Shown: positions 12,258 through 28,757 of the stretch, piece by piece
How the letters are laid out: every line of letters starts with the position of its first letter
Position numbering within the stretch: position 1 is the first letter of the stretch
Assembly: GCF_964194025.1 (NCBI RefSeq)
Contig: NC_134476.1
Span: 60,636,001 to 60,700,000 of the forward strand
Direction of reading: 5' to 3'
Origin: Convolutriloba macropyga
Lineage: Eukaryota
DNA: 64,000 bases
Made by a program: the position numbers and the translations under genes
The notes under the pieces: generated by a model
Told to the model about the DNA's origin: nothing
Databases searched by the model: none
The model's input: the letters and a program-made list of their open reading frames with translations, nothing else

Positions 12258-15200
12258 ACTCCATCGGCCTAATAACTGCAACCTATTCATAGAATGTTGG
12301 AAGGAAGAAATTAATGAATTCAAGACTCGAATGTCCAACTGGGTTACAACCTCTAAAGTTTTCGAATCTCCTGTCTCCGTGGCTTTCTGTATGAATAATT
12401 GGCTGCAAATAATGCTCCAAGAAATCTAATGTATGAATGACTTCTCTCAAACTTTATCCTAATCTCATTTCAGCGCACCTTTCGACAGCTTGAGTCTAAC
12501 GTCCTTGTGAACTGAAACCTGCAAGAGACTACAATCAAACGTTAATAGAGTCTGAGAGGACACAGATAGGATAAACAGAGTTCCAGTTGAGGGGAAAATA
12601 GCGCCTCCTTTCAAAGTAAACTCAGTGTCTTAATATATTCGGCACGGCAATAGACAAAATAATGACCTCCAGATGGAAAAGATTGGTAGACAAAAGTTAC
12701 AATGTAGCAGATCTTGCATTTGCCGAATTGCAGAATTGCTGTCATTGAAAAAAGCAGTCCGTTTTGATAGAGCGCTTTTAAAACTTTCACCAAACCATGA
12801 AAGGTGCAAGGCAATGGATATGAATTGCGTTACCGATTGAATGTTAAGGCTCAACAGCAAAGAGATCCAGTATGTTTAAACCTTCAGTTACCCTTATTGA
12901 CATGAGACTGCAGTGCTACAGATGAAGTGAATATCAGAATAACCAAATACGTCCAACCTATTCATAGAATGTTGGAAGGCAGCAGTTAATGAATTTAAGA
13001 CTCCAATGTTTGAATGGGTTACATCCTCTAAAGCTTTCAAATCCCCTGTCTCCGTGGCTTTCTGTATGAATAATTGGCTGCACATAATGCTCCATGAAGT
13101 AAAAATGTAAGGGAGACTGCTCTCAAACTTTATCCTAATCTCATTTCAGCGCACCTTTCGACAGCTTGAGTCTAACGTCCTTGTGAACTGAAACCTGCAA
13201 GAGACTACAATCAAACGTTAATAGAGTCTGAGAGGACACAGATAGGATAAACAGAGTTCCAGTTGAGGGAAAAATAGCGCCTCCTTTCAAAGTAAACTCA
13301 GTGTCTTAATATATTCGGCACGCCAATAGACAAAATAATGACCGTTTTGATAGAGCGCTTTTTTAAAACTTTCACCAAACCATGGAAGGTGCAAGGCAAT
13401 GGATATGAATTGCGTTACCGATTGAATGTTAAGGCTCAACAGCAAAGAGATCCAGTACGTTTAAACCTTCAGTTACCCTCAGTGACATGAGACTGCAGTG
13501 CTACAGATGAAGTGAATATCAGAATAACCAAATACGTCCAACCTATTCATTGAATGTTGGAAGGCAGCAGTTAATGAATTTAAGACTCCAATGTTTGAAT
13601 GGGTTACATCCTCTAAAGCTTTCGAATCCCCTGTCTCCGTGGCTTTCTGTATGAATAATTGGCTGCACATAATGCTCCATGAAGTAAAAATGTAAGGGAG
13701 ACTGCTTTCAAACTTGCACCTAATCCCATATCAGCTCACCTTTTGACAACTTGTGTCGAACGTATTTGTGGACTGAAACCCGAATGAGACTACAGTCAAA
13801 CGTTCAAAGAATCTTGGAGGAAATGTATACAGATAAATAGTCAAGAAAATTAACGGTTGCTTTCAAAGTAAACGCAGTCATAATCTATTCTGTACACCAA
13901 TAGAAAAAAATGGCCTTCAGATGAAAACGAGATGTGGACAAAATGAACAATGCAACAGACCTTGCCTTTGCCGACAACAGAACTTTAAAGATTAGCATTC
14001 ATTGATAAAAGCTGTCCTTTTTGATAAAAGGCTTCTTTCAATCTTCGACCAAACCATGGAACATTTAAAGCAACGGATGTGAATTGCGATACTGATTGAA
14101 CGCTAAAGCTCAGCAGCAAAGAGATCCACTTCGTTTCAGCCTTCAAGTACCTTTATTGACACGAGACGGCAGTGTTACAGAGCCTGTGGTGCACTTATGT
14201 CTTGTGAAAAATTCGAGATAAAGAATTTAATAATGTTCAGTTTCTAGAAAAAGGTTGTTAGGTCGTAGTATTTGTATGTGTGTGAAACGTGGGTGATAAA
14301 ATAGGAGCAATGGGAACAATTTTACTCTATCGGCCCTTTAACTGCAACCTCTTCATAGAATGTTTGAAGGCAGCAATTAATGAATTTGAGACTCGAATGT
14401 CCAACTGGGTTACCACTTCTAAAACTTTCGGATCCCCTGTCTCCATGGCTTTCTGTGTGAATAATAGGCTGCAAATAATGCTCCATTAAGTCAAATGTAT
14501 GAATGACTGCTCTCAAACTTCAATCTAATCTCAATTCAGCGCACCTTTTGACAGCTTGAGTCTAACGTCCTTGTGAACTGAAACCCGCAAGAGATTAAAA
14601 TCAAATGTTAATAGAGTCTTAGAGGACACAGATACGATAATAAAGAGTTCAAGTTGAGTGGAAATTGGCGCCTCTTTTCGAAGTAAACTCAGTGTCTTAA
14701 TATAGTCGGCACGGCAGTAGACAAAATAATGACCGTTTTGATAGAGCGCTTTTTTAAAACTTTCACCAAACCATGGAAGGTGCAAGGCAATGGATATGAA
14801 TTGCGTTACCGATTGAATGTTAAGGCTCAACAGCAAAGAGATCCAGTATGTTTAAACCTTCAGTTACCCTTATTGACATGAGACTGCAGTGCTACAGATG
14901 AAGTGAATATCAGAATAACCAAATACGTCCAACCTATTCATAGAATGTTGGAAGGCAGCAGTTAATGAATTTAAGACTCCAATGTTTGAATGGGTTACAT
15001 CCTCTAAAGCTTTCAAATCCCCTGTCTCCGTGGCTTTCTGTATGAATAATTGGCTGCACATAATGCTCCATGAAGTAAAAATGTAAGGGAGACTGCTCTC
15101 AAACTTTATCCTAATCTCATTTCAGCGCACCTTTCGACAGCTTGAGTCTAACGTCCTTGTGAACTGAAACCTGCAAGAGACTACAATCAAACGTTAATAG

Positions 15201-27200: not shown

Positions 27201-28757
27201 CAGTCATTTTAATAGCTGAGCGGGCCATTTATTGGTCTTGTTTTTTAAAATATATCAGAATAAACAAACCTACCAAAGCGTTTCGTGCACTAATGGCTTC
27301 TGGAATAGTCGAAATACTAAGAGTATACTCCAGGTCAGGTTCTAGAAAAAGGTTTTTGGTCGTAGCTTTTGTATGTGTGAAACGTGTGCGATGAAATAGC
27401 AAAATTACGTTAGCTGAGAGTACAATTATCAGCTCTTAAATTAGGCATCAAAAAATCAGCTAATGATTTTGAGAATTCAACCCGTCTACCTGTTTTCGGA
27501 AGGCGCTCTGATTTTTCCTCGGGTTAATTCAATGAGTTAAGTTCAGCTGAGTGTCTCTTTGCGAGTAAATTGTTAAAACGTGGATGAGAATTAGTTTTGA
27601 AGTACGTGAAGTGACTTCGAAAAGTCATTTAGAGATTGGGGTAATCTTGCAATTCAGCTGTATAAGCAGTCGAATAGCCGCTTAAACACGTTGTCAAGTA
27701 CAGATGAAGTGAATATCAGAATCAACAAAGCTACCAAGGCGTTTGGTGCACTAAAAGCTTCTGGGTCGTAAACTTTTTTAAAAATATATTCCGCTTTTTG
27801 AAAAGTTTAAAGTCCTAGTTCGCGGTTGACAAGCATTTGGGCAGCACAAAATTTCAGATGCTTCGGCACTTGCCGTTGATGAGGAAGAGAAACAAATGGT
27901 TCAGTTCGCGTTAGGGATTTTTTCATTTTTCTATTATAGCTTCCGTCGTTTGTTCGTTTCAGGCTTATTAGTAGATGAGCGGGCCCTTAATTGGTCTTGT
28001 TTTTTCTAAAAAATCAATAGACCAAGCTACCAAAGCATTTAGTGAACTAATGGCTTGGGGAAAAGTCAATGCAAAGAATTTAATCAAGGTCAGGTTCTAG
28101 AAAGACGGTGTTAGGTCGTAAATTTCGTATATGTGAATCGTGTGTGATGAAATAGCAAAATTACGTTAGCTGAGAGTACAATTATCAGCTCTTAAATTAG
28201 GCATCAATAAATCAGCTAATGATTTTGAGAATTCAACCCGTCTACCTGTTTTCGGAAGGCGCTCTGATTTTTCCTCGGGTTAATTCAATGAGTTAAGTTC
28301 AGCTGAGTGTCTCTTTGCGAGTAAATTGTTAAAACGTGGATGAGAATTAGTTTTGAAGTACGTGAAGTGACTTCGAAAAGTCATTTAGAGATTGGGGTAA
28401 TCTTGCAATTCAGCTGGAAAAGCAGCTGAATAGCCGCTTAAACACGTTGTCAAATACAGATGAAGTGAATATCAGAATCAACAAAGCTACCAAGGCGTTT
28501 GGTGCACTAAAAGCTTCTGGGTCGTAAATTTTTTAAAAAAATATATTCCGCTTTTTGAAAAATTTCAAGTCTTAGTTCTCGGTTGAAAATTGGGCAGCGC
28601 AAAATTGCAGATGCTTCAACACTTGCCGTTGATGAGGAAGAGAAACAAATGGTTCAGTTCGCGTTATTGAGATTTCCTGATTTTTCTATTATAGCTTCCT
28701 TGGATTGTTCCTTGCAGTCATATTAGTGGATAAGCGGGCCTTTTATTGGTCTTGTTA
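12258..28757. repeat. ~16.5-kb modular (patchwork) tandem array
   Basis: Near-identical blocks at offsets 585, ~756, ~857, 1739, ~1850, 1976 and ~2825 bp. About 25 copies of the junction GATGAAGTGAATATCAGAATAAACAAAGCTACCAAAGCGTTTGGTGCACTAA or truncated variants. Confidence 0.95.

Follow-up and report, generated by a model that had tools for sequence, protein, structure and literature searches.

The stretch of DNA analysed here (the window; 64,000 nucleotides of Convolutriloba macropyga) corresponds to C9:60636001–60700000 of an assembly totalling 1,175,981,408 bases; positions are those of the window unless preceded by C2, C5, C8 or C9. At 12258–28757 it carries a 16.5-kb tandem array, in which about 28 units built from few modules are all repeated in direct orientation (self-BLAST) and are joined at a motif of ~50 bp. 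The array contains a decayed piece of the reverse transcriptase (RT) of a long interspersed nuclear element (LINE), and it is probably an old, locus-specific, macrosatellite-type tandem repeat derived from a transposable element (TE). No repeats outside 12258–28757 and no inverted repeats were found in the window by self-BLAST; the array announced at this place in a preliminary description is real, since self-comparison finds direct repeats exactly there. The array was not detected by Tandem Repeats Finder, because its periods exceed 500 bp. Modules were assigned by greedy tiling with six reference modules, and the tiling covers the array, which runs from precisely X:1 to the end of Z. The array, its modules and its sub-arrays are as follows:

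12258–28757 (+), whole tandem array (self-BLAST; own-genome DNA searches match this place only)
12258–12953, module X, 696 bp
14182–14323 (example), module Y, about 142–190 bp
17611–18049, module Z, 439 bp
22743–22981, module W, about 240 bp
23038–23188, module V, 151 bp
24052–24091, module U, 40 bp
12258–17610 (+), left sub-array, X-rich (module tiling, unit comparison)
17611–22592 (+), middle sub-array (module tiling, unit comparison)
22593–28757 (+), right sub-array, fixed-order higher-order repeat (module tiling, unit comparison)

In the left sub-array Y is lost at four joints, where the motif is fused to X:11; a 76-bp deletion lies within X, and a 2.8-kb segment is duplicated with 98.6% likeness (13342–14734 = 16165–17561). 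The middle sub-array opens with (Y X) units, three to four in number, ~835–855 bp long and 92% alike, and continues with mixed units (motif + Zb; Y X; motif + Zb + partial X). The right sub-array (6.2 kb) repeats the series [Y W][motif V Z][Y W U][motif Zb] with a period of ~1.8 kb, in 3.4 copies, neighbouring copies being 88% and those two apart 84% alike. Fixed order and a regular period were found at 22593–28757 (1.8 kb) and at 18050–20585 (833 bp) and not in the remainder. Module order had been described as variable throughout; this holds for the left two thirds and fails at 22593–28757, so that a plain higher-order repeat of fixed order makes up about one third of the array.

Several of the modules are related to each other. 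V:2–69 corresponds to Y:82–151, i.e., to Y minus 50 bp, and V as a whole is this deleted Y together with an inserted miniature inverted-repeat transposable element (MITE) of 131 bp; the tail of V and the head of Z (23112–23242) together are the MITE; Z:23–133 matches the head of W, Z and W thus having a common head; and the joint from W to the motif is the same as that from U to the motif, save for a 7-bp indel. The preliminary description spoke of shuffled unrelated modules: the flanks do change at the motif, but V is Y plus MITE, Z and W share a head, and X and Y adjoin each other in a single RT fragment (see below). The MITE was found by genome search and by comparison of the copies in the window at the following positions:

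23112–23242 (no strand assigned), MITE-like element, 131 bp
24900–25027 and 26717–26845, further copies; 17617–17669, half copy

The terminal inverted repeats of the MITE are GGATCTTTTGTTTTGCCCCC and GGGGGCGTAAAACAACAGATCC, and its target duplication is 8 bp long (AAATAAGG); the family has more than 1,700 candidates genome-wide, on both strands, with 83–89% identity. A MITE with an 8-bp target duplication is presumably hAT-like. The element was inserted once, in one unit, and was later amplified along with that unit.

Apart from the MITE, the array is unique to this locus. DNA searches found no copy of any other module elsewhere in the 1.18-Gb genome; the motif (38 nt, ≤3 mismatches) was found at ten places in the 1.18 Gb, all of them within the array, which is also the only match of own-genome protein searches with array pieces. 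The genome-wide copy number of the motif and of the non-MITE modules, a check named in the preliminary description, is accordingly that of the array itself.

The assembly of C. macropyga (1,175.98 Mb) was obtained with hifiasm and Hi-C from PacBio HiFi reads (64×; fragments of about 10 kb) (PMC13650328). The 16.5-kb array exceeds the length of such fragments, and heterozygosity is 3.65%; both would favour an artefact of assembly, either in the array itself or in the order of its modules. Such an artefact is nevertheless extremely improbable: the unit divergence of 2–29% gives unique overlaps; the array has no N run, the window's single one being at 9030–9229; and contigs of two samples that cross several of the motif joints agree with the assembly at ≥99%. 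Contigs of three runs (X1 of S1; X3 and X4 of S2; one study, probably that of the source project) covered 29 of 30 bins with 95–100% likeness; no contig of run X5 (another study) matched the array.

The motif core (23 nt, ≤5 mismatches) was recovered in 22 copies, including all ten positions given in the preliminary description, and about six further copies are truncated or degenerate, giving ~28 units; a recurrence of about 25 times, as estimated before, is borne out, as is, by the module tiling, the location of the motif where the flanking modules change. Two copies are of particular note:

25850–25905 (+), well-kept motif copy, translation TDEVNIRINKATKAFGALK (motif scan, translation)
14096–14323 (+), duplicated at 16927–17150, oldest core lineage, 'Xdiv'-Y unit (unit comparison, alignment)

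The residues of the translation quoted earlier for the motif are present in the array, but that translation is a composite of different copies: VSAFKYL and LLTRDGSVT are from divergent copies near 14100, and DEVNIRINKATKAFGAL is from right-hand copies. The 'Xdiv'-Y lineage keeps FKYL, LLTRDGS and LYVCETWVI, and 36 bp of its motif core are deleted. Over 12 copies the conservation of Y equals that of the motif, so the constant part of the array is a core of ~200 bp (motif + Y) rather than the motif by itself.

The origin of this core was traced as follows. A degenerate DNA pattern was back-translated from the motif (DG-4-[ED][VI]-2-RI-x-KA-2-AF-2-L; estimated ~44 bits); when ≤2 mismatches are allowed, two copies in the array agree with it, as against none in 100 shuffles. 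Among viral contigs no match was found; at least 120 metagenome contigs were matched, and in all 80 of the contigs that were fetched the match lies inside RTE-like LINE open reading frames (ORFs) of up to 1,150 amino acids (aa), in the shared context '..F.YLGS..DGG..D[IV]..RI.KA..AF..L..VW....IS..TKLRIF...V.SVLLYGSETW...F.NRCLRR'. Five long ORFs carry Exo_endo_phos, RVT_1 and DUF6451, with the pattern in the interval that separates RVT_1 from DUF6451; the label RTE-like refers solely to the arrangement of domains in the ORFs that were matched. Frameshift-aware alignment to those ORFs gave scores of 97–112 for array units versus 36 ± 5 for shuffles (z 10–18), and the reverse strand of the units scored at background. 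Since the references had been picked by the pattern, the alignment test was repeated without the 22 pattern residues: the upstream part gave z 4.4–6.7 in four of four units (reference ORF L120) and z 2.2–6.7 (L060); the downstream part was weaker (z 0.4–3.7).

19383–19878 (+), best-documented RT stretch: end of X, motif and first ~115 bp of Y (frameshift-aware traceback)

This stretch, interrupted by stops and frameshifts, is colinear with aa 810–998 of the L120 ORF (189 aa), from the region of the YADD box to 'LLYG.ETW'. In the traceback ADLAFAE is paired with VDLEYADD, CKAMDVN with CKAMFLD and FSY with FTYLG; the thumb follows, and the end is formed by CVRS*LLYLCQTW, paired with VRAVLLYGSETW. 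In the oldest copy, near 14280, LYVCETWVI is paired with LYGCETWLV. Further upstream, X:212–375 resembles RT preceding the YADD box (z 4–5). A profile of 13 RTE-like ORFs matched 28 array pieces, every one on the + strand and in RT order, and one Y piece matched a C-terminal profile devoid of the pattern region with E 4.8e-4 among 937 pieces. Across the whole window, a profile of the 13-ORF type gave E ≤1 for thumb pieces of the array and for one stray piece at 33322–33603 (−); no other RT or endonuclease signal was found in the array flanks by this profile scan. The stray piece, an open piece of 94 aa, has E 0.11 to positions 776–825 of the RTE-like RT profile, and is either a decayed RT scrap or a chance match.

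As judged from these comparisons of sequence, most of X and the first ~115 bp of Y are a decayed RTE-like RT fragment of at least ~500 bp, and the RT-derived share of the 840-bp X + Y unit is probably ~600 bp. The assignment of the motif to the thumb region of a LINE RT, proposed from the letters of the sequence, agrees with pattern matches, alignments and profiles alike, which place the motif where the thumb begins in an RTE-like RT. The RT piece is larger than had been supposed: at least ~500 bp of the 840-bp unit are RT-derived, and because RT covers most of X and Y contiguously, these two modules cannot count as inserts without relation to each other. Each unit is broken by stops and frameshifts, and none is an intact or recently active LINE copy.

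Other searches gave little or no signal. No match was obtained in Pfam scans of 15 stop-free array pieces or in a word-indexed protein search with a 53-aa array piece; among 1.84 billion proteins a profile of 12 pieces picked out none but the ORF of the window itself and, spuriously, a repeat protein of low complexity, as is expected, since a decayed match of ~22 aa cannot reach significance there. Weak leads from the Atlas to DUF6451 and RVT_1 were later seen to point the right way. Comparison by blastx and by frameshift-aware alignment with 14 Jockey-/CR1-like LINE ORFs of the own genome (so called on our reading of their thumb motifs) gave z below 2. No RT signal was given in alignment or profile by W, Z (minus the MITE) or X:1–211. 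Assignment of X:1–110 to the 'CLRRIL' region of RT was not supported by the alignment test. Zb, compared with the LINE C-terminus, reached z 4.0 with one of four references; its profile matches are at noise level, and the similarity may reflect composition.

Around the motif, 6 of the 12 possible combinations of left and right neighbours were seen. The copy at 21669 consists of a left-type 5' half (AATAATCAAA) and a 3' half of the Zb-linked type ('CACTAAAAGC'). New joints near the core are the following:

motif joined to X:11 through a filler of 11 bp
36-bp deletion of the motif core
end of Z joined within the motif
Y:32 to Zb and Y:32 to Y:82, adjoining a GTCG(T)A microhomology

In the preliminary description a small RT fragment was taken for a recombination or template-switch hinge by which unrelated sequences had been amplified. 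The motif is indeed RT-derived and is found at most module changes; even so, very little weight can be given to a template switch mediated by RNA or RT. The RT-derived part spans most of X and Y and is contiguous in RT order; the unit joints are head-to-tail at the DNA level, with microhomologies of 2–6 bp and small fillers; poly(A) tracts are absent at the units, and target-site duplications were found only around the MITE; finally, no copy lies elsewhere in the genome, where retroposition would tend to leave some.

The architecture is better accommodated by duplication of DNA. The seed would have been a decayed piece of an RTE-like LINE ORF, from RT palm to thumb (X:~212–696 + motif + Y:1–~115), that also took in the adjoining X:1–211, W and Z. 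The array would have grown by one tandem duplication after another, with different units that overlap, namely [X motif Y] in the left part and [motif Y W ... Z] in the right part, whereby every unit type came to hold the thumb-coding core (motif + Y, about 200 bp). As this core is the sole homology common to all unit types, it is there that units of different type would undergo unequal homologous exchange and gene conversion; we infer that exchange in the core swapped left and right neighbours and so produced the appearance of a hinge. The start of the array at X:1 and its end at the end of Z are as expected from overlapping duplications of one ancestral stretch. The other variants are probably due to short microhomology deletions near the core, to the single MITE insertion and to the 2.8-kb re-duplication, the order of these events being a matter of reconstruction.

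Several observations weigh against this derivation. By hand count, 8 of 20 breakpoints fall within some 120 bp out of 1,550 unique bp, a clustering beyond what exchange by itself would give; the excess at the core is suggestive, is partly inherent in defining a shared segment, and implies that the region may also be break-prone or kept by selection. The parent LINE family was not found in the own genome by first-look searches, despite more than 2,000 DUF6451 candidates; alignment and profile gave no origin for W, Z and X:1–211; and the long-range order of the units is that of the published assembly, the aligned contigs being 130–300 bp long.

The core may, beside exchange or in place of it, be an intrinsic hot spot of breakage or recombination, or a selected functional element (e.g., an array of protein-binding sites). 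By hand count, seven of about ten distinct classes of rearrangement have a breakpoint in the ~120 bp that surround the motif; the joints Y:32 to Zb and Y:32 to Y:82, which are separate events, set out from a single base beside the GTCG(T)A microhomology; and the motif includes a 15-nt palindrome (ACCAAAGCGTTTGGT). The hairpin predicted for this palindrome is, however, not above shuffles (z −0.75 to −1.27), and the palindrome is mutated in several copies; the motif is no better conserved than the adjoining Y; a shared segment has breakpoint borders by construction; and there is no Rfam match. This explanation is therefore unlikely, though conceivable. That the core is kept for a role at the DNA level (binding or pairing) or as a break hot spot, and that tandem amplification of LINE thumbs may recur in the genome, is quite unlikely. 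Two candidates for the motif were rejected: a hairpin, whose fold is no better than that of shuffles, and a small nucleolar RNA or other known structured RNA family (best Rfam match E 0.58, below the gathering score; motif fold at shuffle level).

The tandem repeat reconstructed here from overlapping duplications is old. The copies of Y are 71–100% alike, those of the 'Xdiv'-Y lineage being the most distant, and the units differ by 2–29%; a divergence of up to 29% speaks for an old array and against the nascent satellite suggested before. Nor is it a classical satellite, with many loci or very long arrays and with homogenised monomers; there is one locus of 16.5 kb. The array appears to bear no sign of function. 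It had also been proposed as a source of small RNAs, similar to PIWI-interacting RNAs (piRNAs), directed against the parent LINE. Arrays of TE-derived sequence on one strand are a common look of piRNA clusters, and the present array has this look; yet it holds only one LINE fragment and one MITE, and the motif (38 nt, ≤3 mismatches) and the non-MITE modules are present nowhere else in 1.18 Gb, so that small RNAs made from it would find no near-complementary LINE target. Such a role is highly unlikely.

TE-derived satellites are known from chicken (centromeric, from CR1-C), from LINE-1 (PROsat) and from plants (retrotransposon arrays) (PMC6947457, PMC9659126, PMC12628747, PMC7004042, PMC5932611). 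As in these, an internal piece of a retroelement would have been amplified head to tail by unequal exchange or slippage at the DNA level, and higher-order units and a secondary TE insertion into the array are seen. Unlike these, the array is a single 16.5-kb locus, neither multi-locus nor megabase-sized; its units are not homogenised (71–100% alike); the amplified sequence is coding RT, palm to thumb, and not repeats of untranslated regions or long terminal repeats (LTRs); and its several unit types overlap on one core. In macrosatellites and higher-order repeats mosaic units are formed by unequal crossing-over. With macrosatellites the array has in common units of kilobase scale, higher-order periodicity, and variants by deletion and partial duplication, whereas its left two thirds are without a regular period. 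The array is, then, a known kind of repeat in an unusually mosaic layout.

With the RTE-like LINE ORFs (L060, L085, L112, L120 and L136) the array shares, in colinear order, the YADD box, F.YLG, DG..E[VI]..RI.KA..AF..L, the W...K region and LLYG.ETW. It differs from them in keeping about 200 codons, with many stops and frameshifts, and in having neither endonuclease, nor 5' RT, nor a recognisable C-terminus or 3' end; among such ORFs no close relative of the array fragment was found in the own genome. The metagenome contigs from which these references were taken (L059–L138; host-associated and environmental) contain many RTE-like LINE copies, presumably of animal DNA; several of the ORFs are intact (1,000–1,150 aa), and identical ORFs occur on different contigs (L068 = L104). 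A LINE ORF of another composition was noted in the own genome (L045; C5:6858000–6864500): it has 1,348 aa with PHD finger, endonuclease, RVT_1 and RNase H.

The array is a fully resolved example of an internal coding piece of a LINE turned into a mosaic tandem array, and it illustrates overlapping duplication units, exchange at a core common to all units, deletions at microhomologies and a MITE that was inserted and later copied together with its unit. Its main value lies in annotating repeats in the new assembly of C. macropyga and in pointing to similar arrays of LINE fragments in the genome; taken alone, it opens no new biological question.

Elsewhere in the genome, matches to DUF6451 and endonuclease recur at regular spacings of about 1.3, 1.5 or 4.2–4.3 kb at several loci, where more tandem arrays, of LINE fragments or of LINE copies, may be suspected:

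C9:40900979–40913823 (−), spaced DUF6451/endonuclease matches
C5:56525330–56531632, the same
C8:30623718–30632937, the same
C2:19880528–19883849, the same; others exist

In the window, two features precede the array:

263–5413 (−), long open frames with DUF1759, Peptidase_A17 and RVT_1, i.e., an LTR retrotransposon of the BEL/Pao type
9738–11498 (+), flanking host gene, a single intron-less open frame of 586 aa with zf-C2H2_jaz (open frame, domain search)

The zf-C2H2_jaz finger sits N-terminally in the 586-aa frame, and the stop codon lies 760 bp upstream of the array; the gene is single copy, save for one paralogue of 29% identity at C9:56310862–56312046.

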